Source: Amphiscolops sp. MND2022 (Eukaryota). Taken from it: DNA of 64,000 nt. Positions 5,143-47,483 of this stretch are shown piece after piece. The stretch covers positions 10,416,001 to 10,480,000 of the forward strand of contig OZ076421.1 of NCBI GenBank assembly GCA_964187785.1, written 5' to 3'. The translations under genes and the position numbers were made by a program. Each line of letters begins with the position of its first letter. The stretch's first letter is position 1. The notes beneath the pieces are model-generated. The model worked only from the letters and a program-made list of their open reading frames with translations, did no database searches and was not told where the DNA came from.

Positions 5143-5735
5143 ACAAGCCGGGACCGGCCCAAGTCGGCGCCATATCCAAGGCTCAAAAATAGCAAAAGGA
5201 CTTCCAAGAGTCAATTTACAGTAATCCAAAATCGAAAAAGCAAAAAAATGGACCGAGTGGCGCGCCGGGGCCCGCTAGCGCGAGTCCCTGGCGCGCTAAA
5301 AGGGGGACATTTCCGAAATTGTCAACATTTTTGTCGCAGTTGAAGGGGGGACCCTTTGGAGAAAAAACCAAATTTTTGGAAAAAAAATCTCACAGTGCCG
5401 AAAAAAACTGAAAGGGGGGACCCTTTGGGATTTTCCAACATCCATTCTGTCGCAAAACAGTAAAAAAAATTGAAGGGGGGACCCTTTGGGTAAAATTTTT
5501 TTAGCAAAAAAGTCTCACAGTGCCGAAAAAAATTGAAAGGGGGGACGCTTTGGTCTCGTCCAGCATGGTATGTTACGCGGGAAAACAGGAAAAACCTTTT
5601 TGGTTCAGTTCGCTAGACCAAATAGTGCAATTTGGTGCAATAATATTTTGTAGAACTTATAAGAACTATTTTGGTCAGTTCGTGTGGATTGAAAAAAAAG
5701 AAAAGCCACTATAATAGTCGCGTTTCACTTCATGA
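5143..5735 (+). mobile_element. Non-autonomous Helentron/DINE-like element with internal tandem units
   Basis: 5-prime end AACAAGCCGGGACCGGCCCAAGTCGGCGCCATATCCAAGGCTCAAAA; internal repeats GAAAGGGGGGACCCTTTGG and CTCACAGTGCCGAAAAAA. Same family as the insert at 42470-42872. Confidence 0.55.
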
Positions 5736-5787
5736 TCTATGAGATCATAAGATATACGATCCATAACGTGAACTTTCAATTTCAACG

Positions 5788-6111
5788 TTATATCAAGGAA
5801 TGGTTGTCACGTCCCACTTGGGGCTGCTTTGAAGGACCCTGAGAGCCATATGGCTGACTGTCATTACTAGTTTTATTAATAACTGCCATCATCAAATCCT
5901 TCAGTTGACTAAATTCTGAGTTTAATTCATTGATTTTGCGTTCATAATTTTCCTTCATTTCAGTTAACTGAGAAGAGATATCAGAACTGTCATTGATGTC
6001 AGAGTCGTTCGGGTTTGATTGTGCCATGTTCAAGTCTTCTGGAGCGTTCTTTTCAGATGGAGAGTCAAATATTTTGCCGTTTCTGAGTAGTGTACCTTGA
6101 CTTAGACTCAT
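5788..6111 (-). pseudogene. Truncated gag-like N-terminus of an LTR retrotransposon
   Basis: ORF lies downstream of an LTR+PBS+leader on the same strand, has an LRNGK start motif and a coiled-coil segment, and is cut off at about 5800. Confidence 0.5.
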
Positions 6112-6699: not shown

Positions 6700-7560
6700 A
6701 AGAGACGGAAACAGGATGAATGCATTCACTATTGCCCTAATTTCAGGTCAAATTAAGATAAAGTACATTGCGCGATGGGAAAACGATGTTTTCTGTCTGA
6801 TAATAGCGCTAATAGATGATGTTTCGCACACGAAGATGAAAATGCGATGAAAACATTGGAATACTTGCTATTTCCAAGTCTGGTTCAGCTCAGGATGAAA
6901 ATGCGATGAACTGCAGTCAATCTCGCTCAAAAATCAGCACAATTTAAAATTACGATGACAAAGAGATGAACTCCCTCTGTTTTTTGCTTTTTCCAACACG
7001 AACCAAAGTATCGATGAATTAGGGATGAATCCGCTCAACAAAATGGATAATTCCAGCACGAACTAGAGTAGCGATGAATTAGGGATGAATTTACTCAACA
7101 AACTGATAATTCCAGCACGAACTAGAGTAGCGATGAATTAGGGATGAATTTACTCAAAAAAACTGATAATCCAGCACAGTCACTCTTTTAGGATGAATTA
7201 AAGATGTACTTTCTCATTTCTCTCTCTCTGCAGTTCTCGCGATGGATAAGCGATGAGTTACTTGTCTTAAGAAATTACAGGCACATTTGGAATTTCCAAG
7301 TATACTTTGACGATGAATTTTGGATGAACTAGTAAAATTAAGTCCTGTAAAATCCACTGATGGATTGATGATGAAATACGTAAAAGTCCCACATTTAGTT
7401 CATTCGCAACTCTGGGAATGAGATTGCGATGAACTATGTTAGAATAGCGTCAGTAAATCCGCTGATGGTTTCGGGATGAGTTATCACAAATAAATTGAAT
7501 TCACCAGTTAATCAGCTAATGGATTAACGATGAACTTTAGAAAAAGTATCGTCACGACTA
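6700..7560 (-). repeat. GATGAA-rich retrotransposon leader including a ~58-bp tandem array at about 7020-7175
   Basis: Many GATGAA/GATGAT words; tandem unit TTCCAGCACGAACTAGAGTAGCGATGAATTAGGGATGAATTTACTCAACAAAACTGATAA seen 2-3 times. Confidence 0.65.
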
Positions 7561-7783: not shown

Positions 7784-7983
7784 NNNNNNNNNNNNNNNNN
7801 NNNNNNNNNNNNNNNNNNNNNNNNNNNNNNNNNNNNNNNNNNNNNNNNNNNNNNNNNNNNNNNNNNNNNNNNNNNNNNNNNNNNNNNNNNNNNNNNNNNN
7901 NNNNNNNNNNNNNNNNNNNNNNNNNNNNNNNNNNNNNNNNNNNNNNNNNNNNNNNNNNNNNNNNNNNNNNNNNNNNNNNNNNN
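7784..7983. other. Assembly gap (200 N)
   Basis: Run of N. Confidence 1.
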
Positions 7984-8760
7984 GTACAAGTAATGTAGGG
8001 TTGCTCACAACCATAGCTCTTATTTTATGACTTCATATTGCCCATATCTAAGTACATAAGACATAGTATTTACATTACAGATTTTTCGTAAACTATATTT
8101 CCATCATGCTGGCATGACACTCCCCGGGGGAGGGATTTGGACTGAGAGTGCAGAAGCCAAATGTGCAGAGGATGGTTGTCTCAGCGTGGTCTTCGACTGT
8201 TCTTCCTTCGTTTGGTTGGGGAGATATTATCCTTCTGGTTCTGAGTTGGCTTGTCCTTCATCAGTGCTGTCCCGTGTGAATCTTCTCTGAGAAGGGGACT
8301 TCGGCAGTCGTCTCTTGTCTGGTATCATCCTGGGTGATTCCGGTTAAAATTTGGACGCGGCAACTCTAGTTCTTGGCCCATCGGATGTCCGCTGATCTGC
8401 AATTTATTGGTTGTCATGCTTTTGTCGGGAGTTAGTCGGCTAATTGTTTTGGTGAAAATTTGCTTTCTTGGTGAAGATTTTCCCTCCAAGCCGCCTACGC
8501 TAAGTTGACACTTTGGCAAGCTTCGTTGGCAATTTAGCGATGAGTTGGCGCCGCCACCATTACAGTGCATCTGCAAGCTTTTTCTGAGCGTTTTGCGGAA
8601 ATCAGGACACGAAATCTCGGAAACCGAGACGCGTGCACTGAATTCATTCCCCTTTGATGTCCACTGCCTTAGCTTCCTTTGAAGTTGAAATCTTACTTTC
8701 CGCAATTTTGTGTCTTGGCAAGTTAATGGGGCCAACTAATTGCCACTTATGCCAGGCCTC
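7984..8760 (-). mobile_element. 3-prime end of a degenerate LTR retrotransposon (coding relic, PPT, LTR start at 8119)
   Basis: Minus strand CGGGGAG|TGTCATGCC at 8126-8111, preceded by a GC-richer ORF-like relic. No recognisable domain. Confidence 0.35.
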
Positions 8761-8890
8761 AATAGCGCCAATTATTTCGAGAGCAAATAGTGCTCAGTGC
8801 TAAATGTGTCTCAGATTCCAAAATTTTATCCAATAGAGTAATTCGTACGCCTACATTCCGCAACACGTATATCCTGTTTCCGCATTTTTT

Positions 8891-9073
8891 AAAATAATTT
8901 ATTCCAGTTGGTATAAATGTATTTCACTTTTGTATATCACTATATACACTCAGTATAAATATTTTGCACTTTAGTAAAGTGTTGAAAGAAATTTTCCTTT
9001 TTCGTTTTTTTTTCAAATTCATTTTCAAATTTCATTTTTTCAAATTCCAATGCAGTTGGTATAATTGTAGTAC
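8891..9073 (+). repeat. 183-bp direct repeat, left copy
   Basis: Aligns without gaps to 26494-26676 with 8 mismatches by hand count. Confidence 0.9.
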
Positions 9074-9784
9074 CATAGGATGAATGTAGTACAATCCGCA
9101 ACACGTATATTCTGGTTCCGCATTTTGTCTTGATACAAAATAAGTAATGTTATGATACAAAACTAGTAATGTTCATGTTCGGAAACAACATTCTGTTAAT
9201 CACGATTTGACCCACGATTGGAACCAAAATATAAATTCAATTCCACACTAATGACTTCAATAAATCTTTCATTTTTTTAACAATTTCATTACAATTGGTA
9301 GAAATGTAGTATTTCTCTATTGTATTTCACTATAGTCTAATATTTACAGTTGAAAGTCTAAAGAATACAGTTTTGTCTATTATTGTGGTAACTTGAATAT
9401 GAAATCAGTGAAATATAATTGAAAATCAAAAAAGATATTTCTCAAATCAAAAAAAGTGAAATATATAGATTGCATTTGAAACAAATTCGGTTCCAATCGT
9501 GGGTCGAATCTTGGTGTTTCTATTCCTTAATATATCGTTGAACCTCGGAATATTGTACTGTCTGTCACATTACCGTATCTCTCGTAATTACGTAATCATT
9601 TGTCGTGACCAATGACAAGTTAGTATTCTATGAACGTGAGAAATATACGGAAAAACGAACAGATTACCATGTATTACTTCTCTTAGTTATAGAGGCAAGA
9701 TAAACTGATTGTAAGTCACGTGTAATTTCTGTTTTAAGAAAATGATTTTCACAACCGATTTTCACAACTGATTTTCACAACCAA

Positions 9785-10048
9785 TTGGATAGAAGAACAT
9801 CAAAAAAAGAGATGCAGTGGCGCAGTGATCATTCCATGTGGGCTCTTCCTATCATTGTGAAGCGGAACACAATGTCTTTTGCTCAGTCTATATGGAGGGA
9901 ACACAGAGCAGTCTGCATCGAATCACCAGGGAGTTTATGGGCGGGGATTGAACCGGTGGTAGACAACGTATCAAGCTTCACTACATACCCACAGGCATTA
10001 TCAACTGCGCCACCATCCCCATTATGTCGTTGCATTAGACACATATAA
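9785..10048 (+). CDS. Small unknown protein (likely ATG at 9812, MQWRSDH...APPSPLCRC), paralog of 54845-55117
   Basis: Shares QWR...IESP.S....I.PVVDN..S.TTYP...S.APPSP.CRC with the B copy, with many synonymous third-position changes. Confidence 0.7.
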   Translation: MDRRTSKKEMQWRSDHSMWALPIIVKRNTMSFAQSIWREHRAVCIESPGSLWAGIEPVVDNVSSFTTYPQALSTAPPSPLCRCIRHI

Positions 10049-10117
10049 AAACTTTTGGAAATCTCCGATAAGAAATTGCAGTGAGTGATTTTTGATATGA
10101 CAAGAAACGACTTTTAT

Positions 10118-10140
10118 ATGTATATATATATATATATATG
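10118..10140. repeat. (TA)n microsatellite
   Basis: TATGTATATATATATATATATATG. Confidence 0.9.
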
Positions 10141-10622
10141 ACTGTGTATTATTATCAGATTGCATTCATTTCATCGTTAGTAATGAATTGAAGCATCATA
10201 ACTCAACTCGACCCACGGTTGGAACCAAAATTTTCTATGTTTGAATCTATTTGAATAAAAATATTCGAGGAACCTATTTTTTACCATTGAACTTGTGACG
10301 TTTTGTAAAAATTTGAAGTACGTTTTCTTTTACCGCTAATGATCAAGGGGCTTCCGATGAATTTTTTGGTGTGAATTGTATTGGAAAATTTATTCCATTC
10401 AAATTTTGATTTATGATTACATAGTAATTGAATTCTTCAAACCAAACCTAATTTTTGCGTTACGAAATCTACTTTGGAATGGTTTAAAATTAGATTCAAG
10501 CTTTCGTCAGGATTTTAAAATCAAAATTGTTCCAGTGGAAACTTAGTAACAACATTTTAAACTCTCACGTACACTAAAACCAATGCCACAAAAGTCTAAA
10601 AGTTTGTCATTCCCTTTCAACG

Positions 10623-13337
10623 TCAATTTTCTTCGTCTGAGTCTTCTCCACGATTGTCACTGTTTTCTTTTCTTGGTTCTTGACTACCGCTGCATCGGCT
10701 GCTGGTGTTTCCGGAGCTGCTCCCCGACTGGGCCTCACTGAATTCAGAGCGGGCTACCGGATCTTCATAGTCGAACATTAACTGCTCGAAGGGATGAATT
10801 GTTTTACTTGCTCGGAGGACAACATAACGTTGATTGTTGTCGGCAAATACAGTGACATCAGTGGACTTCATATTGGCTTCTAAAACTGAGTGATTGGCAA
10901 GGCGACCCATACATCTACTATCAGGGTGGACAGGACACGTTTCCGCGGAGGCATTGATTATCCTTCGGCCAGGTCCTTTGACTTCAAGACAAAACTCCCG
11001 TTTAACACCTTCAATGGCGGATACTTCGTCCATTGATGTCTTGAGGAAAACCTGCCCGTGGTAATCAATGACGACTTCATTTTTCTGGAAAACTCGGGTG
11101 GCAACGATTCCTCGTCCAAACTTGCTAAATGAAACTTGCGTGACTCCGGGCCATTTTTGAGATCGACATCTCTCCATAAGCGAAGTTTGATCTTCAAACT
11201 CCATATTGCTTGCCAATCCTTTGTAATAAATCTTCTGAATTGCCTTGTTCGTTTCTACTTTTGGGGTAATAAATATTGGGAGCACAAGTAGATAAACTTT
11301 TCTCAGGTCTTGGTTGCCGTCATTCTGCGTCGTCCACTTCTGTCGATGGAAATAGCTCTTCAGTCTCATTTCCAACGAAGCAAGGTCAGTTTTTCCATTC
11401 ATATGCTTGAAAAAAGCATGGGCACGAGCTGATTGGCGGGCATATCTCTGTCGATCCTGGTGCCTTCTCACCGCCGACTGCACGACCTGGTAGTCCAAGG
11501 CAATGTCCAGAGTCTGCCAAATTGCTCTAGTTTGGACCTTCAACTTAGGGAGTACTGCTTCAGTGTCGTTTGCGATGGGCAACACAACATGAAGGTGCCG
11601 TTCCAATTCCCACAGCGGGCTAGCACAGTGTTTCAGTACCTGTTTAAAACGATACCAACATTAAATTGTGTCTAAATGCATTCTGAATTAATGATATCAA
11701 CAGTGTACGTGTCACAGATAGATCGACCCCCGATTGGTACCAAAAACTAGCAAAACTAGCTCTACAATATAAATTGTCCCAGTTTCCACGGATTTTCAGT
11801 ATAATTTGACTTGCTCAAAGAAAGCAATGCGGAAAGCAAGACCATATCTTTAAACACATGGCGTGGAAACCAGATACAAATCTTAATACATTGCGAACTT
11901 TCACTCAAAGGGGTGTACACATTATTGCGCGTTACCATGAATGTCCTGGATTCCACGGTTTTAAGTTTGAATTGACTTACTCAAAGAATGCATTGCGGAA
12001 AACAAGACCATATCTTTAAACACATGGCGTGGAAACCAAATACAAATCTTAATACATTGCGAACTTTCACTCAAAGGGGTATACACATTATTGTGCGTTG
12101 CCATAAATGTCCTAGTTTGAACGGTTTTTGAGTATAAAACGGCTCGCTTTTAAAAGTCTTCGAGAAAAAAAGACCATATCTTTGAACACGTGGTGAAAAT
12201 CGAATACAAATCCTAACTCATAGTTCTATTCAAAGGGGTATGATGATGATTTGTTTATACATACCGACTCCATATATTGGTCAACAACGTGGCTAGGTCG
12301 GAAGTTGGATTTCCCAGCTGAGTTCACAAAAACCAATTCGGTGTACAGGATCCGATTGTCTGTCTCACTCAGCAGTCTTTCGAAAGGAGTCCCCTCACCG
12401 TGGTCCAGAAATTCGCTTCGAACACTCACGAAGTAGTCCACAAAGCCTTCCAATAACCATCGTGGTATATTGTAGCACGTTTTTCTGGCGCACCTCTCCG
12501 CTACATCTATCTCAAGCACGAAAGAGGCATTTTGGTCGTCTGATTCTTTCATCTGAACTGCTGCCTGCGCCACGGCGTGGACAGTCACATTGCTGACCTC
12601 CCGATCCAGAAAACCCAAGAATATTAAAACGTAAGCCATTAGACTTCGGAAGAACCCTATTTGGACCTTTTTCGTAGCCAGAATTCTCTTACTGCAACGC
12701 GATACATTCTCTGTTATTGTCCATTTAATGAAAGACTCCACTGTATCGGTTTTGTAATCAGGCTTCTTCTTCTTGGCGGGAACAGTCTAAAAAATGGAGA
12801 GTTTTCAAAAAGTGTCTTTATTGTATTTAAAACTGATAACGCATCCTCCAGGAATTAAAAAGTAAATTGGTTTCTATGAAACGTAACCCTTAATTGGAAC
12901 GCAAAATTTGAACAATATGTATTCAGAAGTTTTACTATACTTACCATATCAACTGGTGGGGGCATTGGACGTTTGTTTGCTACATTATCGGAGCTTGGAT
13001 GTCCATTGGACGGTTTTGGAGGAATTATGATCTCAGCTGGTAATTCGCTCTGATTGTTTAAAAACTCGTTTATGACCTCTTCAGCTTCAGTCGGGAGATG
13101 TTCCGTTATTATTCCATCCTCATTGAAGCTGAATTCAGGTGGCTCTTGGAGGCGGAACGGAGTGCTGTTGAGTGGCCCGCCGGGTGTTTGGCTAAACATC
13201 ACGGGCGATACCAGGGGCGTGAACAAACCAGAAGGAGTTTGCATTTGGGTTAATGTCAGAGGCGTAGACATGTCCGCGGAAGACGGTGTTGGAATTGGGG
13301 GCATCGACAAAGGCAGCGAGGTTTTATTTTGTTCCAT
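10623..13337 (-). CDS. Intact 3-exon gene (exons 13337-12945, 12786-12265, 11639-10623; about 643 aa): Pro/Ser/Thr-rich N-terminus, degenerate tyrosine-recombinase-like core, C-terminal SETD8/PR-Set7-like SET domain
   Basis: GT-AG phase-0 junctions join three open frames. SET motifs GRGIVAT, VIDYHG, GRLANHS and EQLMFDY are present. The YR-like segment is AYVLIFLGFLDREVSNVTVHAVAQA...VFVNSAGK, without the catalytic R or the downstream HxxR/H/Y. Confidence 0.85.
11725..12215 (+). repeat. 166-bp tandem array 1 (about 3 units) headed by motif A, inside intron 2 of the SET gene
   Basis: Unit TTCCACGGTTTTAAGTTTGAATTGACTTACTCAAAGAATGCAATGCGGAAAACAAGACCATATC... repeats with a 166-bp period. Confidence 0.9.
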
Positions 13338-13635
13338 TTAGTAAAGTTAGATTTTCTATTTTGACGGTCTGATTTTCAGAGACGATTTCAAGATAATGAT
13401 TGTAGATTTCGAATATTTGTTGATATGAATTACGATAATATCTGATATTTAGTAATTAGTAGTGCCATATCCGGCTGTGCAACCGAAAACCTCAATCTTA
13501 AATGAGGCATGTAAAAAGCGTTATTTCGGAATGAGGCTAGTGTCTTCATTTCCAATTATTCCTAATAGTGCACCTGCTTCGTAATTAGGTGACGATTAGC
13601 TGTAATTAATTTGGGATGCAACCAATCTCGTTAGC

Positions 13636-13955
13636 GTCTTCTTTAACGCTCATCCCATCAACATTCATCACTTAAAAGGTCTACATATTCTATTAGTTTC
13701 GAGCTTTAAAATAAAGTCTTCTTTAACGCTCATCCCATCAACATTCACCACATAAGGGGTTTACACATTCTATTAGTTTCGAGCTTTAAAATAAAGTCTT
13801 CTTTAACGCTCATCCCATCAATATTCACCACATAAGGGGTCTACATGTTTTATTAGTTTCGAGCTTTCAAATAAAGTCTTCTTTAACGCTCATCCCATCA
13901 ACATTCACCACATAAGGTGTCTACACATTCTATTAGTTTCGAGCTTTAAAATAAA
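13636..13955 (+). repeat. 4 x 80-bp tandem repeat in the divergent promoter between the YR-SET and Tudor-like genes
   Basis: GTCTTCTTTAACGCTCATCCCATC starts at 13636, 13716, 13796 and 13876; the array ends at the ATG at 13957. Confidence 0.95.
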
Positions 13956-13956
13956 A

Positions 13957-15194
13957 ATGCTTCTCCAAACCTTCTATGAAAATGAAGTTGTGCAAATCTT
14001 GGATCCTGCGACATCAATTTGGGAATCAGCGAAAATAATTTCCTTTGTGAGCGATTGGTGTGTAAGAATTAAATGGGTCGATTGGTCTTACAATAAAAAA
14101 GAAGATATCACTGTTCCCGAAGTATACAGACCTGACAAAAATTACTGGAATTTTAGAAAATCCCACAATCTTGTCCGCGAAGAAACTGTGAGCAACAAAA
14201 GACGGTCAACACCTCTTAGCTACAACGCTCGTCGACTGGTCAGAAACGATCAAATTTACTTTTGGCAACCAGAATGTAACTGTGTAGATAGCGAAAGATG
14301 CCAAGAGGACCGTTGCTGCGGGTCAGTTGTGATGGGTTGGGTAAAAATTAATGACCCTTTCTGTCAACAATGTTTGATAACCGACGTGGAGGACAATGAT
14401 GAGTATGTTTCGTATCGCCAACTAAGAAATAAACCTTGTGTAAGAGACACTGAACCAGAAATTGATGAAACTGAACAAGATCATGAATCAGGATCTGACG
14501 TACATCGCCCATTCGTCAAGAAGCAAGCCCGTGTGACAAGCGCCACCCAACCGATGCCACAAGTCGACATTCTTTCCTTGCTTCCCAGTGTTGACGATGT
14601 CGTTGAATTAACATATGCACCCTGTGAAAATGATATCATAAAGGTAATGTTTTCTTGCTTTTTTGCTTACAAACTTTGCTTTTGAATTTTGATAACCCTG
14701 GATTGGCACCAAATTTTTCAAAGTATTTTTCCCACCAAATATTTGTTCAATCTTTTTATTTTCAGGTGGGATCTATTGCATCTTACGCAAATGATGATTT
14801 TGAAATCAAGAAGATTTAATATGATCATCAGAAGAGAAAAGCATGTGCATTCATGCAGAGCAGAAGTGACCCTGACATTGAAGTGCGCATCCCGACAATT
14901 CGTGTTGTCACAACAACATCTTCTAAAGGCGATGTAATGGATTTTAATTCGCTTCTGGAGCCCATGGACCAAGTCTATGCTTTGTTTTCTGCAATAAAAC
15001 GAATGGTGGGACTCTCAAGAAAGAAGCATTCCTTAACTGCAACATTAGTTCCCTGTACCCCACTGACAAAAAACTCTGTGGCTTCGAAACTGGCAATCTC
15101 AAAGAGGCCGTTAAGTATAGTTTTGCAAACCAAGAGGGACATAAATGGTGCAACGGTACATGGGATACTGTACTTGGAAGAAATTGGGATATGA
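13957..15194 (+). CDS. Tandem Tudor/Agenet-like (royal family) protein; exons 13957-14643 and 14766-15194, premature TAA at 14817
   Basis: FYENEVVQILDPATSIWESAKIISFVSDWCVRIKWVDW fits a Tudor-like beta barrel with aromatic residues. A second barrel-like unit is VMGWVKINDPF...YVSYRQL. A phase-0 GT-AG intron joins the exons. Confidence 0.5.
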
Positions 15195-15574
15195 TCCCAT
15201 GTCACGCAAGCGATGGAGAAGATGTTCTTATCAAGACAATGAGGTTCATTGAACATCAAGAATTTGGCATGTTCACGATTCGTGTCCAGTTTTTGTCAAG
15301 CCAAGGCCACTACAAAAACAGCCAATATAGAGATCTGAGTCGAAATGTACCTGTCTCAGATGCATGAAATACTCTTAAATACTCCTGAATTTTAAAAAAA
15401 CTTTCTATTCGTGTTTGATCATTTTTTGTTTGTTCAACAATTTATCTTTCATCATTATTAGTAATTATTACAATATAAGCTCCATGACCTTGTATTCTTG
15501 AAAATTCTTGAGAAAAGTCTTAGACTATCGAATTACTTTATTCTGAAATGTAATGCACTTGTCACATATAGATC

Positions 15575-16085
15575 AACCCCTGATTGGTACCAAAAATGAT
15601 ACAATCTCAACAATATCCGGGATTTTATTTGCATGTTTTCCAACTTTTTTCAGGAAATTTGATTTGCATCAAAAAGCAATGCGGAAAACAAGGACACATC
15701 CTAAAAAACATGGCATGAAATCCAAACACAAATCGTAATGCATTGCTCAATTCTGTTCGTCTCGGTTTCCACGGATTTTCAGTAAAATTTGACTTGCTCG
15801 AAGAATGCAATGCGGAAATCAAGACCATATCTTTAAACACATGCCGTGGAAACCAAATACAAATCTTAATACATTGCGAACTTTCACTCAAAGGGGTATG
15901 TATGTATGCAGACACCGGATTGCGCATTACCATAAATGTCCTGGTTTCCACGGTATTTAAGTGAAAATTGACTTGCTCAAAGAAAGCAAGGCGGAAAACA
16001 AGGACATATCTTTAAACGCATGGCGTGGAAACCAAACACAAGTCCTAATACGTTGCTCAATTTCATTCGAAGGGGCGTAGTCATG
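15575..16085 (+). repeat. 166-bp tandem array 2 (degenerate units) headed by motif A
   Basis: Same unit as 11784-12215, preceded by AACCCCTGATTGGTACCAAAA. Confidence 0.85.
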
Positions 16086-16478
16086 GTTTTCAGAAAATAA
16101 TCAAACAATTTTTGTTTTTCTTTTTTTATTACCTTTTGAGTATTTCCAATCAGATAACACTTTACCAAGATGAAACAAACAGTCCTGAGAAGTGAAAACT
16201 TCTAATTACGAGTGATAAGACTTAATGGAAGACTCTTTTGCATCTGATTGAGATTATTGACAAAATGGCCTTGGGTGATATGGACTCAAATTATTAAAGT
16301 ATAATTGAACCGTAATTCATCAGTTTAATGAAGAGACTCAAAACCGGACTCATTTCACTTGTGGGTTTGTGTATCTAATTGCATTTCATTTTATTGTATG
16401 GTAAGGGTTGCAGTCTGACAAATGTTCTACAATCTATACAATTTCACTTTGCAATAAACCTAAAAACCAGCTTTAGAA

Positions 16479-19400
16479 ATGACTCCACTGTCAATGTGGG
16501 AAAGAAATATTATCGAAGCGGAAAATGGGAAATTCTTCGCTAACTGTCGACTTTTTGACGATATATCCGGAAAAGAAATACCGAATAAGTTTCGGAAGTT
16601 CGAGACACTTGTTGGGGAAATGTTGACTGGGACAAATTTAAATTCAAAAGAATTCATTCGAAGAATTGCTGTTAAAGGCCAGAAAACTCCCCCTGTAGTT
16701 GTAGCAGCAAAATTGGCAAAACTACTTGTACTGCGTGGATTTAAAGACTTCCCTTGGAACTCAGCCAGAAGAGAGTTTGTCAGTTTGTTTTTCAATAATG
16801 ATGTCATACCATATCACAATCTTTACATGAAAGACACCCTTGTGACACCTGCAGATGCGACTCCTGAAGATTCGGCCCCTGAAGGTCAAGTCAGTGACAA
16901 TTCTCTCTCAAAAGAAAGAAAGCTAGAAATATCAGACGCCAAAAAAGTCAAACATGAACAAACTGATCCAATTAGAACAGATCTGATGTCAGAAGTTGGG
17001 TTCAACAGTTTCATGAAAAAAATCAAAAGCTCTGCAAATAAGAGAAAAGATCAACGATTCACAAAAAAGAGGACCCAAACTTAGTCAAAAAAATTGTAGA
17101 TCTTTTCGAAAAAAGAGAATCTACTGATGAGTTCAGGCACCATTTATCTCTTGTTACGAAAACGGGTAACACGGAAGATGTTATAAAAGTTATTCGAACA
17201 AGACTTTCAATTGTTGGACTCGGATACAATTTAGTCCCATGCATTCGATTGGTCAAGAAGTCAACATCCGAAATTCAGTCCTACTTTACAGCAATGTGTG
17301 AGCCAGAAAGAACCTTTTCTGGTTTTCGCTGCAACCTGATAAAATGCGTGGAGACGGTGTCATACTTCTTGTTTGGAACGAAAGAACTCAATGGCCAACG
17401 AGTTGATATCTGGGGAGATGGTTGTGAAATTGGAGGTGTCGAAACAACACGAATTGCATTCCGGATCCTTACTGACAAAATGAAGTGTCAATCATCCGAT
17501 GCAGTATTCTGTTTTGCTGCATACAGGGGTAAAGATAGTAGATCCGCAATGGAGCAAAACCTTGGACCAACTATAGCTGGAGTTCAAGAGTCTGGTTGGC
17601 TTTTTATGAAGACCCTGGAACTATCAAAACGCGGAGTTAATTTAACATACAGTGGCGATTCGCCGTTTTTAATGAGATTGGTGCTCGGAATCACAAATGA
17701 ATCAGCTAGCCCATCGAAAATGCCACTCTATATAACAGAACTTGATTACACACCAACAAAATGTCATCATGAAACTGGTCTACGATCTGATGTTATTATA
17801 CCCTTCAGAACGGATCTTCCAAAATCTTCCTTGGTCTTCTACGAAAATATACAATCAGTTTGTCCTGATGCCACGCATATGACCACCCTGTGTTGAAAAT
17901 GACCTCCAAAGAATTGCACAGAAAATTATCAGAGAAAAGCATCCTAATCATGATGTAGCAATTCGCCAGCTTGAAGAAAACTTGACAAGAAGAGATGCGA
18001 AGAGACCATACTTTCAGTTCAACATATCTCATAGAAGTGGTTCGTGTATCGGTACTGTAGGTGCAGTATCCCTCTCAGGTGGTAGTGCTCTAGCGGTCAT
18101 TGCTGATAAAGAGGAGCTTGCAGGTGCAAAAGACGGTAAAATTAGCGATCTTTACCATGGTGTTTGGGGTCCCGAAGATATCATTGTTGGCAGTGAAGAA
18201 AACGCAAATGTCCCTTGCGTTAACATCCTAGGAAACTGGTTTCCTAAACTTTTCAATAAAGATAACCCCAAGCAAAAAGAGTCCAATGACAAATTCATAT
18301 CTGCTTTTGATGCTTGCGAACTCCTGCGATCGAGTTTAAACCAATGTGTTTTATGTCTGCGAGCAGAAGAATTCAACAGTGAAACGTTCAAAAAATGGGC
18401 TGAAGTTTATTACCAAACCAATATCTTGATATTCGGGCATGCCGGTTTGACACCTTATAAATTGAAAATGCTGATGTTTCCTCAATTTGTTGAGAGTGGA
18501 TATATAAAAAGACCATTTGATCATTTGTGTGAAGGTCTTGAAAAATCGAACCACCAAGCTAATCGTGGCTTTCAGACAAAGACAATGCGCGGAGGAGGTA
18601 AGATCTATCACAAGGATCCACTATTCCTCGAGTCGTCCTTTTCTTTCTTGAAATTTTTAAGATTCGCAGTTGAAGTTGAAGACAAAGGGTCGGACGCTGA
18701 ACCAACTTCTAAGATTATCATGGAACCTGAACAAGACGCAACAACAGAGGTCTACTTTGATGACCATAATATGACTGGAAACAGAAAGATCTATCAGACA
18801 GTTTCGAACAGTACCACAAACAGCGTAATGAGTATACTTCATAGTGCAACAAAAGTGATGGACATTGACGTTCCGGGACCTGAGTACCTTGATATTTGCC
18901 GCATAGAACCACCGTTAACAACTATCGCCATTGGATGTCAAGAAAATCCTTTAAGTGGATTAAGATTTTGTCTGCTTGGTCGCTTGGGTACTTGGAAAAA
19001 ACATACTCTAACACATGACATGGTGAAACAATTGATCATCAATATGGGAGGAACTGTTCTAGAAAATGAACAAGCTGACGTGTTGATGAGCACCCATTCA
19101 CAGCTCCCCAATTGTTTTGTTCTCGTCAAGGACGAAAAAGACTGAATCTTAGGTACCGGTTCCACAGAGGAAATTAATGACATGAAGAAACCAAGGAAAA
19201 GAGGGTCATCAGCAACACGGGAGGGTGGAAATGAACCATCACAATATTCCAAAATAGCAAAACCATTCGCAGCTGGGGGTTTCAAATTCTTGAATATCGA
19301 ATTTTTATCTGAAGTTGACGAGAAAAAAATGCTGATTGACCCGGAGCCATACATTCTTCAGCCCGGATCCAAACTTGTTGAAAATCGTGTCAACGACAAA

Positions 19401-19511
19401 AGACCTTTGTTCTTGGACCAATGCAGTGGAAAAACACTGGGTGAAGGTGTATCTGCGATTGTCGCTCTCAAGAGATACCGTGATGGCACTTTTAAACAAC
19501 TTTCGTTTTGA
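16479..19511 (+). pseudogene. Transib/RAG1-like DDE transposase with C-terminal BRCT domain (frameshifts near 17075 and 17890, stop at 19143)
   Basis: Motifs in order: DIWGDGC (D1), SGDSPFL (D2), CPDATHM (DxxH, compare RAG1 IDALH), LTPYKLK, CEGLEKSNH (E, compare RAG1 SEGNESGNK). BRCT: LSGLRFCLLG...VKQLIINMGGTV. Paralog at 59368-62815. Confidence 0.8.
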
Positions 19512-19714
19512 TTTACTGTTCTCTTCTAATTCATATGTTACCCGAACTTGAAACTATTCAATAAATTCTTCAAAAATAAGTATTTTCATTAGGTTTATTG
19601 TGATGCTCCTACGAAACTAGTTTTACATATCAATGATTGGTGTCAAAAAGCACACAATTTTGGGCTCCGTTTCGGCAAACTTTCGTTTGTCTTGGTTTCC
19701 ACAAATTGAATGCG

Positions 19715-20072
19715 CATTACCACAAATGTCCTAGTTTCCACGGTTTCAAGTTTGAATTGACTTACTCAAAGAATGCAATGCGGAAAACAAGACCATATCT
19801 TTAAACACATGGCGTGGAAACCAAATACAAATCTTAATACATTGCGAACTTTCACTCAAAGGGGTATACACATCATTGCGCGTTACCATGAATGTCCTAG
19901 TTTCCACAGTTTTAAGTTTGAATTGACTTACTCAAAGAATGCAATGCGGAAAACAAGACCATATCTTTAAACACACGGCGTGGAAACCAAATACAAATCT
20001 TAATACATTGCGAACTTTCACTCAAAGGGGTATACACATTATTGCGCGTTACCATAAATGTCCTTGTTTCCA
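19715..20072 (+). repeat. 166-bp tandem array 3
   Basis: GTTTCCA starts at 19734 and 19900 (period 166). Confidence 0.9.
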
Positions 20073-20937
20073 TTGAGTTTTTAACTAGCGGAAATTCACT
20101 GTTGAGGTATACTCCTGATTTTTCTCCTATTATTCTTGCATAATCTTGGAAATTATTGCATTAGACGTCCAAACGTTTCAAAGCATGTTTTGAATAATTG
20201 AGAATTTTTTTCAATTCATTTTCCAATTAAACTTCTTGCGCTCGTCACTGAATAAAACAGATTGTAAGGTATTTGGCAGTTTTGTCATTTATTTGTATGA
20301 TACTGAAAATCTAAATCTGAATCTACAGTTTAATCTAAATCTAAAATATCTAGTTCAAGGGGGATTGAGCGGATTCCCGTAATGGCAGCAACAAGAGGAC
20401 AGCGTTTTGGGTGCAAAGATGGATCTACCACCTTTGCCGGCAAGAGAGTTTTTCCCTTGCCTTTAACATGGGTAACCATCATTGCAGGTTTTGACTCGAG
20501 TTCTAGTAGATCCGTTGTCGTCATTACTTCCTCGTAGCTTTTCGTGTAGGGGTCAACAGCGATGGGCACATGCTCTGGAACAGTAAGAGCCTTACTGGGG
20601 TCAGTATTCTTCTCGGGATGCTCTCTCAAATAACTGCGGCTGCTGCTTGGTGGCTCACGCAGTGTCACTGAAGCTCTTTTTTGGCCCAGTAGGATGAAGT
20701 CTTTCAGGACTGAAATCGGGTAGCACCTGTAAAACGTAAAAATCAAACTTTAAACCTGGAGAGCAAACTTTCAATTGAAAAATCCGAAATATTTTTGGTA
20801 TAGTTCTTGTTTATTGACTTAGAAGCACAAAATTTCACTCAGTTGCGTTTTACTTGCATGTATATCAGTCAGACATGAATGTAGAGGATGATCAATTGAA
20901 AAAAGCAAGACTTGTTCATAAACATAAGTTTTTGAAC

Positions 20938-21153
20938 TAGAAAATGACCCTCGATTGGAACCAAAATGGAAATGATTGAAAATGGAAAATAGAAGTTTTG
21001 TTACCAAACAAAACTGAAGGCTTAACAATCTTACTTCACCGAACTTTTCGAACTAAAAAATGACCTTCGATTGGAACCAAAATGGAGATGATTGAAAATG
21101 GAAAATTGAAGTTTTGTGACCAAACAAGAGTGAAGGCTTAACAATCTTACTTC
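20938..21153 (+). repeat. Two ~115-bp tandem units each carrying motif A (JmjC intron)
   Basis: GACC(C/T)TCGATTGGAACCAAAATGG...CTTAACAATCTTACTTCAC duplicated. Confidence 0.9.
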
Positions 21154-22188
21154 ACGGGCGGCGTGTTCATTGTATAGTGATTGCACTGTGCTGTACATCG
21201 ACACCAGGCGTCGACAGAGTCGAGGGCACAGCTTTTCGGCAATACGGTACATCAGAAGTACCAACATCTCTGGAAGATCAGGGAACTTGTCATCGGATCT
21301 TCTCGGGAACTCGACGATGATTGAGTGTCTTATCATGGGCAGGTGCCCGAACGCCAGGAAGTTCGTTCCCAACGAAATGGCATTGCCTTTCGTAAGTACA
21401 AAGTAGAGGAAATTTGCGGGCATGACTAGAACATCTCCAGCTGTGACATGCAACCGCAAACATCCCTCTTCCAGCTGGTCGATGTTCCCGAAGAATGTTG
21501 GCCTGAAAGTAAAAGTACATCGAAGTTGCTTTTCTATTTATTTGACATCAATAGAAGTAAACTAGAAAAAAGTTTAAATATTTGAAAAGAGACGTTAAAT
21601 GCTTGCTTGTTGTTTTCCATCACCAAAAAATGTTAGTCAAAAAGTATAATTGTTTGTTTTTGAAAATAGAACAGTGTTCTTGAAGACAATAAAGTTGGTG
21701 TATTAGTTAAGTTTTGTTACTTACGTAGTGTCGTTCTCAGCATTCGACCATCTTTCAAAAATACTGAGGTTTTTCTTCGACGGTTTCACTAAGAAGAAAA
21801 TCTTCTCTCCAGTTAGAACTGTGTAAAACACAGACGTCGAAGAATAATCCTGATGCCACGTCGTGTGCGCAGAATCTTGAGTGACCAGGACATAATAGGA
21901 AGTAGAACAAGAGTAGGGCTCGGTTCTCGACTTCCCGATCTCCCTGTCTGCCAAATGGTTGATGGAGTTGTCAGCCACCATCTTGGGTACTGTGTATATG
22001 GCCTTGGGGAGTGTCCTGACATCGATGACGTTTAGAGGGTAATACCGACTGCCTGGATGACAGTTGGCCAGCTCCACGAAAAACTCGTCATACGTCATTT
22101 CTCGTGTCTGCAAAAAAACATCTATTAAATGATGCTAGGCAAGGTTCTAATTCATGTTATCAACAGTATACTTATCACAGGTAGATCG

Positions 22189-22700
22189 GACCTGGATTGG
22201 TACCAAAACGAACTCGACATAACTGTCCCAGTTTCCACGGATTTTCAGTATAATTTGACTTGCTCAAAGAAAGCATTGCGGAAAGCAAGACCATATCTTT
22301 AAACACATGGCGTGGAAACCACATACAAATCCTAATACATTGCGAACTTTCACTCAAAGGGGTATACACATTATTGCGCGTTACCATGAATGTCCTAGAT
22401 TCCACGGTTTTAAGTTTGAATTGACTTACTCAAAGAATGCAATGCGGAAAACAAGACCATATCTTTAAACACATGGCGTGGAAACCAAATACAAATCTTA
22501 ATACATTGCGAACTTTCACTCAAAGGGGTATACACATCATTGCGCGTTACCAGGAATGTCCTAGTTTCCACGGTTTTAAGTTTGAATTGACTTACTCAAA
22601 GAATGCAATGCGGAAAACAAGACCATATCTTTAAACACACGGCGTGGAAACCAGATACAAATCCTAATACATTGCAGAACCTCACTTGAAGGGGTATACC
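22189..22700 (+). repeat. 166-bp tandem array 4 headed by motif A, inside a JmjC intron
   Basis: Same unit, about 3 copies. Confidence 0.9.
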
Positions 22701-23289
22701 CATGGTTTGTGTTTTGGAAAAACTAAATTCGGTTTTACTAAATGCTAAACATGGTTCAAACGAGTAAAAAGTGTTTTTTACCTCTCCGATTCTGGCTGAC
22801 TTGACTTCAATTGGAGCATCAGGTTCAGCAAGGTTGACCGGTCGCAGAAGCCGTTCGATCTCCGCGACAAAGCCTTTTTTCGCGGAGAATTTTGGGATTT
22901 TCAGTCCTGTGCAATGCTTGGCTCCATTTCTCCAAATCAAGGGGACACCATGTCGAAGAAGGTGACCAAGGTGTTCGGTTTGATTGTCATGGGGACCCTG
23001 CCACTCAGCGTAGGAAAATTGACAATCCAGAGGCACGTTTTCGCAAAATGCGAAGTGCTCTTGGGTGCCAAATGGGGCCGCTGGAGTCCCAGAATTGAAT
23101 GTCAAATCAAGTGGCATCGGTGGTTGGGCAATTTGACATTTGACTGATCTCGCAATGTGGTTCCTTAGGCTGTAGCCGTACCCGAATGAGGTCCCACACG
23201 AAATGCAGAAATGACGGCTTCTTTTTTTCCTCTCGCAGCTTCTGTAATTTCAAAGACAATTTATCAAATGAATTTTTTCTCGTGAATTT

Positions 23290-23440
23290 CATTCATGGTA
23301 TGACCCATGATTGGAACCAAAAATCTTCCAAGATTTCATGAATGCTTTAATAGTATGACCCATTATTGGAACCAAAAATCTTCCAAAGATTTTATGAATG
23401 CTTTCATGGTATGACCCATGATTGGAACCAAAATCCTTCT
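23290..23440 (+). repeat. 3 x ~56-bp tandem units each carrying motif A
   Basis: GACCCAT(G/T)ATTGGAACCAAAA at 23302, 23357 and 23413. Confidence 0.95.
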
Positions 23441-26400
23441 CGAAAATTTGTGTTTTTAGACCTTCCCTTTCACATCAGAAAAACATTGCCCTTCTTTTTC
23501 TATTGCGTACGGTAATCGGTTCAAGACCGTAAAATATTTCAAAACAAGAAAAAAAATTCTGGAAACAATCTTAACACTAACGGTATTGGTACATCCTGAC
23601 TTCTTCTCCAGCAGCAATCTTTTCTTGTTGCTTCGTGCAATATTTGGCTCTTCTTTGATGGCGCTCTTTACTTTTTTTTGGTCGTGAAAATCTGACCACA
23701 TTTCTCGCACGTCAAAATCTGGGCAACTTGTTCCTGCTTGCTGACACTTTTGCATCCGGGAAGATGACGGGTTAAGTGCCATTTTCTTCCAGCAACGTAG
23801 TCGCAATTCGAACACGGGAAACCTAAAGATAGCCTTTTGAATTATACGAGATGAAGAAGTCAAATAAAAAACCAACCTATACATACAATATACATACCAA
23901 AATCAGATTGTTTTCCACGAGTTACAAAAATGATAGGTTTCATTTAGATTGCTGGAAACTTTGAAAAATGGTAGACATGATATATTGATCCACGTGATGT
24001 TTGATTTGTCAAACTATTTATCATTTCAATTTCAATATCAAAAAATGGAGATTGTCGCTTGTCAATTGGAATTGTCAAAACGAGTACAAGAACGAGTAAA
24101 TGGAAGTCTTACGTTTTTTAGGTGGCGGAGTGGTATCTCGAAATTCGTCACAGAGTTGTCGTTTTCGGTTTCTGGCAAACCAGGGCAAGTGCGGGCATGA
24201 ACAGCAAGGGCTTCTCGAGTGGGGGCATAATAGTCGCAAGCACCGATTGTGCAGAGATGACCTGAGTAATAAAACAACGATGAAAATATATACAAAAAAT
24301 GTGAATATATTCAAAAATTATTTTTTGAACACCGCTGTTCATACAGCCTCAAAATTTCAATACAAATAAATCCAAATAAAGTAAAGAAACGTTCATCAAA
24401 TTTTCAAACATTTTTCACCTTCGCAGTTGAATTTACCCGTTTCAGCAGTTTGATAGTTTTTGACCTTTTTCACTGATAGTCAAGAAAAAGTAACGCAGGA
24501 ATTAACGACTTACCAAGGAACAGTTCTGATGATGAGTCAGATGAGTCCATGCGGGATCTAAAGTTCTGCGAAGTGCTGGGTCCGCTGGGTCCGGGGGCTT
24601 GCTCAGAAGTACTTTGCTCAGAAGCAGCTGTTTTCTTCGATTTCGGCTGTAACAACTTGAAAATGTGAATAAAAGGTCCAAAATATCAAGTGCAAATAAC
24701 ATGAAATTTAAATTAGTTCAAACAACGAAGACAAAATTGTTTACGAGAAAGTTTGGATCTTTCCGTCTCATCCCCCCATCGATTTAAGTCCCCCAGTTAT
24801 TATTAAATAAAAGTTTTATAAATTACCTTTAAAAAAATATTAAAGTATCTCATTAAACATACAATTTTTTTGGAAAAGAATCTGCGTAAAACAATTTGAA
24901 AGTTATCAGGACACTGTTTGAAAAACTGCCCTAAACTTTGAACCAGAATCTGCTACTCAATTGTAAAATCAATTACAGTAGGGGGCTTTTATAACGACCC
25001 AAAGGGGCAGTTGATTTTAAACTGATAATTTCCTGATAAAATCCAAAAACAGTTTCTTGGAATTTGGGATTAAAATTGAAACAAGTAGAAGCCAAGACGC
25101 AATGAATAGCTAACTTTAATTTCGACGCTCTGAATACTTTTGTTTATTCCAATCTTGGAACCAATCTTTGAAAAAAATCCATAAGCAAAATCAATACAAA
25201 GACACTTTAGTGAATTCCCAAATACCATAAGAGCAAATATCATAAAACGAAATTAGTTTCAAATGACAAAAATGAAATGAGTTTGACATTATAAAATAAA
25301 ATTGTTTACGAGAAAGTTTCATTTTCATGTTATTTGAACCTAATTTTGTTTTTATGCTATTTGCTCTTATGTTATTTGGTACCTAATCGACAATTTTTCA
25401 ACCAAAAATTTATTTCCGAAAACGAAAAAATCAACTTACCATTATGATTGGCTTCGGGTTATATCCGTTGATTGGCTGAGGGTAGTATCGGCTGCTGGAT
25501 GTCTGCAAAACTTTGAGTTGTTGAGAGAATCAAAGAGAGATTCAATGGGAGATTCTGGCTTGTTAATCAGTTAACAGTCCGAACGGTGAGAAAACAAGTT
25601 TGACAATGAAAACTGCCGGTCAGTTAGCAATCAGTCAGTTGCTGTGATACGCGCCGCTGATACGAGCCGCTGATTAGCCAATAGGAATCACCCACAGTTG
25701 GAACAGTCATCAGTTTGGTACGAGTTGCTGATACGCGCCGCTGATTAGCAAGGAAATTACTCACGATTGTAACAGTAATGATTTTGATACGAGCCGCTGA
25801 TACGCGACGCTGGTGAGCTTTCAAGCGATGACCGATAAGGCAATAACAATCATATCTGTTCTAATATTGTTGACAAGCAATAAGTTTAAAAGCAAATAGA
25901 AAGCAGTTTCTCGATGACCGTGTAAATTCGAGAATGTTCTAGAAAATATTCGAAAAAAATATTCGAATACGAAAAATCTTAATCTTTTGCTGTTTATTCT
26001 TCGCCTCGAATCTTGATAAAATTCAGTACGAATTTGGCCTCTAAACCTGAAGCATAATACATCATTGGTTGCTTTCATTTTCACGCCCGAAACGATCAAT
26101 AGAAACCGAAAATCTATAGTTAACGATTTCAAATATCGTTCAAATAGATATCATTTTGATTAATTTTGCTCAGATTCGACCCATGATTGGAACCAAAATC
26201 TCCCCATTTCTCCACTCTAATTATTCAAATAAATTTTTCATTTTCCAGTATAATTTATTTCAGTATAAATGTAGTATTTCACTCTTGTGTATCACTATAG
26301 TATAAAAATATTCCAGTATAGTATAGTGAACATTATAGTTAAGTATAGTACAAGTAACCTGAATCTTTTCAATTGCATTCTAATTGACTATTTTAATCAA

Positions 26401-26493
26401 ATTTTTATTTTTATTTATCTAAGCAGCTTTACGATTCGACCCACGATTGGAACCAAAATCCCCCGAATTCCACGAAGATTTTAAAATTTCATT

Positions 26494-26676
26494 AAAATAA
26501 TTTATTCCAGTTGGTATCAATGTATTTCACTTTTGTATATCACTATGTACAATCAGTATAAATATTTTGCACTTTGGTAAAGTGTTGAAAGAAATTTTCC
26601 TTTTTCGTTTTTTTTTAAAATTCATTTTCAAATTTCATTTTTTCAAATTCAAATGCAGTCTGTATAATTGTAGTAC
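26494..26676 (+). repeat. 183-bp direct repeat, right copy
   Basis: Matches 8891-9073. Confidence 0.9.
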
Positions 26677-26999
26677 GATAGTATAGTATAGTATAGATGA
26701 AAGGAAGAGAAGCCGACAGTTTTACGGAAAAAGAGACATTGATTTTAACTTGTTTGTGGAAATTGACTTTGTATTTACTCTCCGGCTTATTAAATTTGAT
26801 TTCAGCTAATTAAAATGTAAGTGGAAAGTAAGACGCTGAAATTTGCAGCCATCTGATTGGTTGTAATGCACTTTGTGGAATCCAAGACACGAATTTGGCG
26901 GCATCTTGTCGGCATTTGTCGGCATATTTTTGGTCCCAGTTTCCGCAAAATGAAACCGGCTAACGTATTAACCCATGCCCTCGGATTCCGAAAAACGCC

Positions 27000-47248: not shown

Positions 47249-47483
47249 CTCAATAGATGAGGGTGAAAAAACGGCTGCTTCTAAGAATAAAGAATGCAAG
47301 ATTTGCCTCGAAAACTTTAGACCAGTAGAATTACAAAGTTTTCACCCAGATTATAGTTGACATTTAGCTTGTAGAGAGTGTATAAAACACTGTTTAGATA
47401 GTTTAGCGAGTGCAGATTTTGTTAGATGTCCTTACTGTAGATTGATTACCTGTAGAGGGTATTTTGTACAATTAAAACTTTGA
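47249..47483 (+). pseudogene. RING-finger (C3HC4-like) exon with an in-frame stop
   Basis: Follows acceptor CTAAACAG; reads ECKICLENF...PDYS*HLACRECIKHC...RCPYCR. Confidence 0.65.

Follow-up and report, generated by a model that had tools for sequence, protein, structure and literature searches.

In the 64,000-nucleotide stretch of the Amphiscolops sp. MND2022 genome analysed here (contig OZ076421.1, positions 10,416,001 to 10,480,000, hereafter the window, in whose coordinates all positions are given), an 18.6-kb DNA transposon that we call cassette A (8558-27136) carries in its non-coding DNA an array of copies of a 21-bp motif, GACCCAYGATTGGWACCAAAA, nearly all of them in the same orientation. 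We give about an even chance to the explanation that this 21-mer is a binding-site array for a protein encoded by the element itself, most likely its zinc-finger-JmjC protein, which would direct chromatin changes to the element's own copies. The motif is taken as such an array because it shows the set of features known from the VANC21 targets of Arabidopsis (PMC5735166); that a protein binds it, which protein this would be, and the anti-silencing outcome are what we infer from the comparison. The copies with which the window was compared lie on other contigs of the same ENA assembly, ERZ25074608 (L002-L007 and L009-L012), or come from another sample (L013 and L014).

At the standard cut-off of at most three mismatches, the 21-mer has 12 matches in the window against 0.00 expected, the chance level being taken from 100 dinucleotide-preserving shuffles, and these matches span 9209-26458, with 11 on the plus strand and a single one, at 9485, on the minus strand (Table 1). 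A 13th copy at 22188, GGACCTGGATTGGTACCAAAA, has four mismatches, and with it the 13 good copies, 12 of them on the plus strand, that a first-pass annotation had counted from the sequence alone are all accounted for. Two further degenerate copies, at 14694 and 19628, can be recognised by their conservation in other copies of the element, and the total therefore reaches about 15, with still only one on the minus strand, at a density of about 0.6-0.8 per kb of element. The same annotation had placed the motif in introns and intergenic DNA of cassette A only, and this was confirmed, given that no copy overlaps an exon, as delimited from open reading frames (ORFs) and tblastn/tblastx matches, and that no match was found in the rest of the window even at four mismatches. 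When all the copies are aligned with their flanks, their likeness is confined to about 21-25 bp, except within the tandem and array-heading sub-groups. The palindromic core TTGG-WA-CCAA that had been described holds for the W=T form, TTGGTACCAA, which occurs in three copies, or four counting a degenerate one, and does not hold for the commoner core, TTGGAACCAA.

The local amplification of the motif was likewise recovered, with Tandem Repeats Finder reporting a 56-bp unit repeated 2.6 times at 23292-23433, where a threefold duplication had been noticed at 23.3 kb, and a 116-bp unit repeated 2.0 times at 20929-21155, corresponding to the twofold one at 21.0 kb. As had also been claimed, the motif heads the 166-bp arrays of the element, since a W=T copy stands 15-35 bp upstream of each of the arrays at 11769, 15628 and 22224, while at the fourth array (19711) it is the degenerate copy 19628 that stands before it. 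Apart from these, a 69-bp tandem repeat at 25645-25812 has in its units a motif-like word, CACCCACAATTGGAAC, beside GC-rich words, TGATACGMGCCGC.

The motif is confined to the element and persists across its copies. In six copies of the element there are 55 matches with at most three mismatches in 91.7 kb of element DNA and none in 72.1 kb of flanking and other DNA (about 164 kb in all), and 53 of the 55 lie on one relative strand, reading from the SET-side end to the JmjC-side end. In addition, all five loci that were retrieved by way of ORF calls in the 166-bp unit turned out to lie inside elements. Relative to the window, exon identity in L002 and L010 is just 72-75%, and only 221-524 of 7632 nt of the remaining non-coding DNA can be aligned; both nonetheless carry 5-11 copies of the motif, and the non-coding 12-mers that they have in common with the window come essentially from the element end, the motif copies and the 166-bp unit core. 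In L002, five matches at the standard cut-off compare with 0.01 expected, and there are 11 at up to four mismatches, all on one strand, while L013, from the other sample (ERZ1742291), has nine copies. In the decayed copy L004, nearly all motif copies have been lost.

The amplification has also taken different courses in corresponding introns. In the intron between the last two JmjC exons, cassette A has a pair of copies with a 116-bp period, L002 and L010 have a pair with a spacing of 60 bp, and L013 has a triplet with a 52-bp period. In the intron that separates the finger-2 exon from the finger-3 exon, the copies number three in L006, L007 and the window, two in L005 and L009, and one in L010, and a SET-gene intron with no copy in the window has three in a 37-bp repeat in L002. 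Elsewhere, the motif recurs with tandem periods of 56, 37 and 51 bp. We also considered, and rejected, the possibility that the motif is the inverted end of a miniature inverted-repeat transposable element (MITE); membership of an independent MITE family was one of the observations that the first-pass annotation had named as speaking against its proposal. The copies at 9209 and 9485 do form a pair that gives 9209-9505 the appearance of a 297-bp MITE, without a target duplication, but the segment with the minus-strand arm stands in inverted orientation with respect to L009, whose homologous copy is oriented as usual, and this local inversion removes the MITE appearance.

Cassette A is a mobile element. 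It has 22-bp inverted ends, CATTACWGTGCATCTGCAAGCT, and the ends of the elements share the sequence CAYTACWGTGCAT, with homology starting at the first base of the inverted repeat at the left end of the window copy, in L002, in L004 and at the reverse-complemented right end of the window copy. Eight ends at seven insertion sites begin with the same sequence next to unrelated flanks, and the inverted repeat, the sharp start of homology and these unrelated flanks together identify cassette A as a DNA transposon. Two other copies are complete at both ends, namely L012 (ends at 4159 and 18664, 14.5 kb), a derivative without the transposase in which one end reads CACTAC, and L013 (ends at 992 and 14102, 13.1 kb); no target-site duplication of 2-5 bp was seen in these two or in the window copy. 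The ends of the family have the form CAYTAC-WGTG..., in which positions 4-10 are a heptamer-like TACWGTG, and a TTTCTGWG box follows at a distance of 12 bp on the SET side and of about 28 bp on the JmjC side. The word TGCGGAA occurs five times in the left 560 bp and three times on the right, in both orientations, and also once per 166-bp unit, and is a candidate binding word for the transposase or for an accessory factor.

The element has three genes (Table 1), and the window copy is decayed in that its transposase, its finger 2 and its JmjC domain are all damaged. The SET gene matches the Pfam SET family (E 1.5e-10), and all 14 of its matches to solved structures are to SETD8/KMT5A. In the window, the transposase is interrupted by two frame changes and a stop codon (sites 16979-17069, ~17890 and ~19143); in the nearly identical copy L001 it is a single intact ORF of 896 residues, with 375 relatives in a 50%-clustered protein library. 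Its AlphaFold model (20 relatives) has a mean pLDDT of 77, and the 49 best Foldseek matches of this model in the PDB are all to RAG1, to BbRAGL of amphioxus or to HzTransib of Helicoverpa, with E values down to 3e-6 and TM-scores, normalised by target length, of 0.36-0.53 (0.40-0.53 for the Transib and BbRAGL entries). The motifs DIWGDG, SGD and EGxEKSNH hold conserved acidic residues, with D279 nearly invariant and E571 and E574 invariant, that are putatively catalytic. The Foldseek matches and these acidic motifs together make it a RAG1/Transib-fold DDE transposase, although neither Pfam nor sequence-level searches matched it to RAG1 or Transib, and neither its core nor its first exon had a Pfam match or a sequence match to solved structures, the C-terminal BRCT domain being the exception. 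The first exon (242 residues, with a cysteine cluster) is family-specific; no relatives of it were detectable, the N-terminal parts of distant homologues fail to align with it, and the versions in L004 and L010 were left out since they contain stop codons.

The third gene, with its zinc fingers and JmjC domain, has JmjC exons that match PHF8, KDM7, PHF2 and KDM2 (E 1e-11). In the window it has a frameshift in finger 2 (~23676), and the distal iron-ligand His of the JmjC domain is replaced by Tyr (21399-21401), as is known for Epe1, which has Tyr in place of its distal iron-binding His (PMC7192584). An Epe1/PHF2-like JmjC protein was thus a candidate reading, but the HxD...H triad is intact, with the distal His kept, in seven other copies, and this analogy was dropped because the Tyr is a private mutation of a decayed copy. 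No Pfam families other than SET, BRCT and JmjC/cupin were found in the element. An 80-bp tandem array (13556-13955, 4-5 units, 92% identity), in which there is no motif copy, fills the divergent promoter region of the SET and transposase genes.

The 166-bp unit headed by some of the motif copies is itself well kept: its identity between the window and either L002 or L004 is 80-85%, against only 65-78% for the exons. Within the unit are an inverted pair, GTTTCCACG...CGTGGAAAC, and a half-motif-like word, GTGGAAACCAAA, and its core, AAGACCATATCTTTA, persists even in the more distant L003; its counterparts in L002 lie at 1258-1590, 5190-5976, 8628-8721 and 9990-10079. The SET exon of L002 (9787-10102) and L004 (9730-10056) has an extra phase-0 intron, for which the window (11345-11350) has an empty site and which L003 also lacks. 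This intron is made up of one motif copy and a single 166-bp-type unit and is bounded by a TTTTTCCAR direct repeat, and it looks like an introner-like gain by insertion.

Related subfamilies have their own versions of the motif. In L003, whose SET protein is about 50% identical, the variant motif TACTCACGATTGGGACCAAAA has about ten copies, which form five head-to-head pairs 6-7 bp apart (52-99, 3493-3547, 7009-7057, 19168-19216 and 19368-19416) inside ~200-bp tandem units located at either end of the gene block, an arrangement that suggests a dimeric site. Within the window itself there is a second cassette, B, with a JmjC domain at 50-52 kb, a SET domain at 58.3 kb and a transposase at 60-62 kb, its ends not being found within the window. 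The cassette A motif is absent from B, which has instead an 18-mer, TGTAACGACTCCAKGAGC, with 17 matches at up to three mismatches (15 on the plus strand, 45743-62414), 11 of them within 45.7-49.4 kb, upstream of the B zinc-finger exons, and none in cassette A. The two motifs have CGAC(T)CCAnGA in common when the 5' flank of the A motif is included, while the 3' half of the B 18-mer is unrelated to the A motif. The zinc fingers vary along with these motifs: the finger-1 helix GR[KNH]WHL[TQ]RH accompanies (G/A)ACCCA (A, L011 and L013), DRLFNLQRH accompanies TACTCA (L003), and TRLFNYNRH accompanies the B motif, while fingers 2 and 3 show good conservation wherever GATTGGNACCAAAA is retained, and B has different ones or lacks them.

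If the 21-mer is a binding-site array for an element-encoded protein, its sites, scattered over introns, spacers and terminal non-coding DNA, would recruit the zinc-finger-JmjC protein, possibly with the KMT5A-like SET protein as a partner, and the recruited protein would place histone demethylase activity of the PHF8/KDM7 type on all copies of the family, the decayed ones included. The copies would in this way be kept transcribable and transposable, with host genes left untouched. The zinc-finger-JmjC protein is the first candidate binder, since it joins predicted sequence-reading fingers to a PHF8/KDM7-type domain with its iron-binding triad intact in the family; what would favour it over the other proteins of the element is solely the finger-1 co-variation, a small and confounded signal. 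The ratio of observed to expected CpG is about 0.8-1.1 over the whole window (1-64000), with no sign of germline CpG methylation in these repeats, so that the silencing of these elements is probably histone-based, and this fits a cargo of histone enzymes.

Several observations weigh against this explanation. The joint variation of finger 1 and the 5' half of the motif, for which the first-pass annotation had proposed a test between motif and finger residues, was indeed found, but with three states only and confounded with the overall divergence of the subfamilies, and it is therefore a suggestive lead rather than a test. A classical array of three or four zinc fingers reads 9-12 bp, which is less than the 21 of this motif. 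No motif copy stands in the divergent promoter of the SET and transposase genes (13337-13957), and the orientation bias could in part be a by-product of local duplication. The confinement of the 21-mer, which the annotation had wanted compared with the genomic background, came out as complete, but is shown for the about 164 kb of element and other DNA of the compared loci; and a scan of JGI metagenome contigs for the motif gave one unrelated chance match, in a contig of 52% GC. Finally, over short distances the motif is not clearly better kept than the neighbouring non-coding DNA (identities of 0.897 vs. 0.869 in L009 and 0.852 vs. 0.901 in L005, in best-hit alignments), and the case for constraint rests therefore on its long-range retention and its repeated independent amplification.

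Other explanations have to be weighed against the one we prefer. The RAG1-like transposase, which the first-pass annotation had named as the alternative binder, might use the motif as accessory transposition sites or for self-activation, as has been reported for the AtMu1 transposase and Spm TnpA, a possibility that we consider unlikely on the whole. Its family-specific first exon with the cysteine cluster, the motif copies located 650-950 bp inside both ends, and the concentration of the cassette B motif near one end would all suit it, and a transposase-derived regulator binding family-specific motif clusters has been documented for Spm, which belongs to the related CACTA group (bioRxiv 10.64898/2026.08.24.746577). 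Most copies are internal, however, where cleavage-competent sites would be harmful to the element, and a role in end recognition is unlikely because the motif stands about 650 bp from the ends, on the same strand at both of them instead of inverted, while the ends are marked by a 22-bp inverted repeat and TGCGGAA clusters of their own. It is in a regulatory role, by analogy with these systems, that the transposase is a serious rival. About as unlikely, in turn, is that the motif is just part of a spreading duplicative module (leader, motif and 166-bp unit, or a MITE-like unit) that fills or creates introns and has no other function. Such a module is real for the three or four copies that head 166-bp arrays, given that about 540 bp are common to introns of two genes at 86.7% identity, and it seems to have created the extra intron of L002 and L004, with its motif, 166-bp unit and TTTTTCCAR flanks; the variant motif of L003, forming the inverted ends of the ~200-bp tandem units, and the MITE-like look of 9209-9505 would point the same way. 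Nonetheless, it does not explain the nine of the 13 good copies that have no 166-bp unit and resemble each other over about 21-25 bp only, and it leaves unexplained the independent tandem amplifications within one intron; besides, the 9209-9505 pair is accounted for by local inversion, the five loci fetched by way of the 166-bp unit all lie within elements, and there is not one copy in the 72 kb of non-element DNA.

Even less probable, in our view, is that the motif serves a host factor, for which NF-Y would be a candidate because GATTGG, read on the opposite strand, gives a CCAAT box, the element exploiting the sites as dispersed enhancers. The ATTGG part is kept in nearly all the copies of A, L002/L010, L003 and the L013 variant, with a few changed, but the conservation spans about 21 bp, ACCAAAA included, the copies are intronic and not proximal to promoters, and the 3' half of the cassette B motif is unrelated; the CCAAT reading is weakened also by the divergent promoter that has no copy and by the subfamily-specific variants, which are not expected for a fixed host protein. 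Equally improbable is neutral hitch-hiking, in which a chance sequence without function was multiplied by replication slippage and unequal exchange. Tandem duplication does explain five of the 13 copies, and the short-distance identities given above agree with neutrality, but the motif has been kept in numerous settings whose flanks are unrelated, it persists in another sample and in subfamilies whose other non-coding DNA is unalignable, it has been amplified repeatedly and independently, and the decayed L004 is nearly free of it.

Among known systems, VANDAL21 and its protein VANC21 in Arabidopsis are closest to a self-addressed binding array of this kind, and the reading as a target site that had been drawn from the likeness to VANDAL elements is partly supported. 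In VANDAL21, as in cassette A, a short family-private motif (YAGTATTAY, whose binding by VANC21 was demonstrated by chromatin immunoprecipitation sequencing and electrophoretic mobility-shift assays) is found in a single orientation in introns, in intergenic DNA and in terminal non-coding DNA, fast-evolving tandem repeats multiply it, related subfamilies differ in it, and the element encodes extra proteins besides its transposase (PMC5735166). The differences are that VANDAL is a Mutator-like plant element, whereas the cassette A transposase has the RAG1/Transib fold; that VANC is its own kind of protein causing loss of DNA methylation, whereas the cargo of cassette A consists of SET and zinc-finger-JmjC proteins; and that in cassette A the motif is sparse and 21 bp long, its binding is predicted, and CpG gives no sign of methylation. 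Cassette A would therefore work like VANDAL/VANC without being a member of that group, given its RAG1/Transib fold, its CACTA-like termini and its lack of VANC.

Those termini, CAYTAC in the family and CACTAC in L012, also recall the Spm/En elements of the CACTA group, and CACTA, Mirage, Chapaev and Transib are placed together in the RepeatMasker 'CMC' classification. The TnpA motifs of Spm/En are family-specific and co-diversify with element lineages (bioRxiv 10.64898/2026.08.24.746577). The TnpA sites, however, form terminal clusters in both orientations, with hypomethylation confined to the termini, whereas the motif of cassette A is element-wide and on one strand, with the nearest copies 651 and 678 bp from the ends and a strand bias of 12:1 in the window and 53:2 over six copies; its subterminal regions are filled by the different word TGCGGAA, and the 3-bp target duplication was not seen in the three complete copies. 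With RAG1, Transib and ProtoRAG, cassette A has in common the RAG1-like DDE core and the heptamer-like TACWGTG, but it adds to them the BRCT domain, the family-specific N-terminal exon, a length of 13-19 kb and two chromatin-enzyme genes. Its ends, CAT-TACWGTG, have the heptamer-like part 3 nt in and do not start with CAC as in Transib, no 5-bp target duplication was seen in the three complete copies, and the 21-mer is unlike the nonamer of the RAG signal.

Mobile elements that carry an epigenetic enzyme are known, as with the KDZ elements of fungi and their TET/JBP genes, and to our knowledge a private oriented motif array is not known from any enzyme-carrying DNA transposon of the KDZ or SETMAR type. 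The SETMAR fusion, cited in a survey of transposon-fused chromatin domains (bioRxiv 10.1101/2021.11.30.470311), also ties a mobile element to such an enzyme, and the passages of that survey that were consulted do not mention an element like cassette A; the transposase families and the enzymes of KDZ and SETMAR both differ from those of cassette A. A full-text literature search combining Transib, JmjC, SET domain and transposon found no paper. We suggest tentatively, and with less confidence than in the binding array itself, that cassette A and its relatives are a novel lineage of 13-19-kb transposons that would combine a RAG1/Transib-fold transposase with BRCT, a KMT5A-like writer and a finger-fused PHF8/KDM7-like eraser with co-diversifying, subfamily-private, oriented motif arrays addressing this kit to its own copies, as a histone-based, non-plant counterpart of VANDAL/VANC and Spm/TnpA.

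Some other features of the window lie around or outside the motif array. A tract of 200 N (7784-7983) stands directly to the left of cassette A, and the block abutting its right end (27137-46000) has a GC content of 47-49% vs. 38%, many short ORFs and an integrase-core remnant at 39685-40116, being probably decayed DNA of a long terminal repeat retroelement. A tRNA-like repeat resembling short interspersed nuclear elements occurs at 9800-10057 in the terminal non-coding DNA of A and at 54983-55088 in B, and is inverted in L009 (15503-15683); it received no ARAGORN or Rfam call, and the Rfam and tRNA (ARAGORN) scans of the whole window found nothing. Upstream of the zinc-finger-JmjC gene, a hairpin-like non-coding segment at 25206-25390 in A resembles 49050-49196 in B, with tblastx matches in several frames on both strands, and this conserved segment may be a promoter element.

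Table 1. Cassette A and its motif copies in window coordinates; the motif copies marked neither as degenerate nor as having four mismatches are the 12 matches at the standard cut-off.
Feature	Position	Strand	Remark
Left (SET-side) terminal inverted repeat CATTACAGTGCATCTGCAAGCT	8558-8579	+	Inverted match to 27115-27136; left boundary
TGCGGAA left subterminal cluster, 5 copies	8594-9122		Both strands; likelier end-recognition repeat than the 21-mer
Motif copy, 0 mismatches	9209-9229	+	Terminal non-coding region, 651 bp from left end
Motif copy, 2 mismatches	9485-9505	-	Sole minus-strand copy; segment inverted relative to L009
Motif copy, 1 mismatch	10210-10230	+	About 390 bp downstream of SET stop codon
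SET-domain gene, KMT5A/SETD8-like	10626-13337	-	Exons ~10626-11640, 12229-12741, 12858-13337
Motif copy, W=T	11725-11745	+	SET-gene intron; heads 166-bp array at 11769
166-bp array, 2.7 units	11769-12216	+	
Transposase gene	13957-19511	+	Family-specific first exon, RAG1/Transib-fold DDE core, C-terminal BRCT
Degenerate motif copy TAACCCTGGATTGGCACCAAAT	14694-14714	+	Directly after transposase first exon; identical in L009 and L001
Motif copy, W=T	15575-15595	+	Transposase-gene intron; heads array at 15628
166-bp-type array, diverged units	15628-16076	+	
Degenerate motif copy	19628-19648	+	Between transposase stop codon and array at 19711; conserved in L009 and L005
166-bp array, at least 2.2 units	19711-20188	+	
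Zinc-finger-JmjC gene	20333-24253	-	3-4 C2HC fingers, then PHF8/KDM7/PHF2-like JmjC
Motif copy	20946-20966	+	JmjC-gene intron; unit 1 of 116-bp tandem duplication
Motif copy	21062-21082	+	Same JmjC-gene intron as the 20946 copy; unit 2 of 116-bp tandem duplication
Motif copy, W=T, 4 mismatches	22188-22208	+	JmjC-gene intron; heads array at 22224
166-bp array, 2.9 units	22224-22703	+	
Motif copy	23302-23322	+	First of three in 56-bp tandem repeat; intron between finger-2 and finger-3 exons
Motif copy	23357-23377	+	Second of three in 56-bp tandem repeat
Motif copy	23413-23433	+	Third of three in 56-bp tandem repeat
Motif copy	26178-26198	+	Terminal non-coding region, 938 bp from right end
Motif copy	26438-26458	+	Terminal non-coding region, 678 bp from right end
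TGCGGAA right subterminal cluster, 3 copies	26941-27074		
Right (JmjC-side) terminal inverted repeat CATTACTGTGCATCTGCAAGCT	27115-27136	-	Same end in L005, L006 and L007 beside unrelated flanks

In summary, self-addressed anti-silencing by transposons has so far been documented mainly in Arabidopsis, in VANDAL/VANC and Spm/TnpA, where it acts on DNA methylation, and the same genomic signature now appears in an unrelated superfamily with a RAG1-like transposase fold and a cargo that points to histone lysine methylation. If this is confirmed, private motif arrays would be a convergent and general strategy of transposons, and the subfamilies of cassette A would provide zinc fingers that are naturally paired with 18-21-bp targets and diversify along with them. 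The RAG1/Transib family would also gain a chromatin-linked relative, which would bear on how recombinases of this family interact with chromatin.

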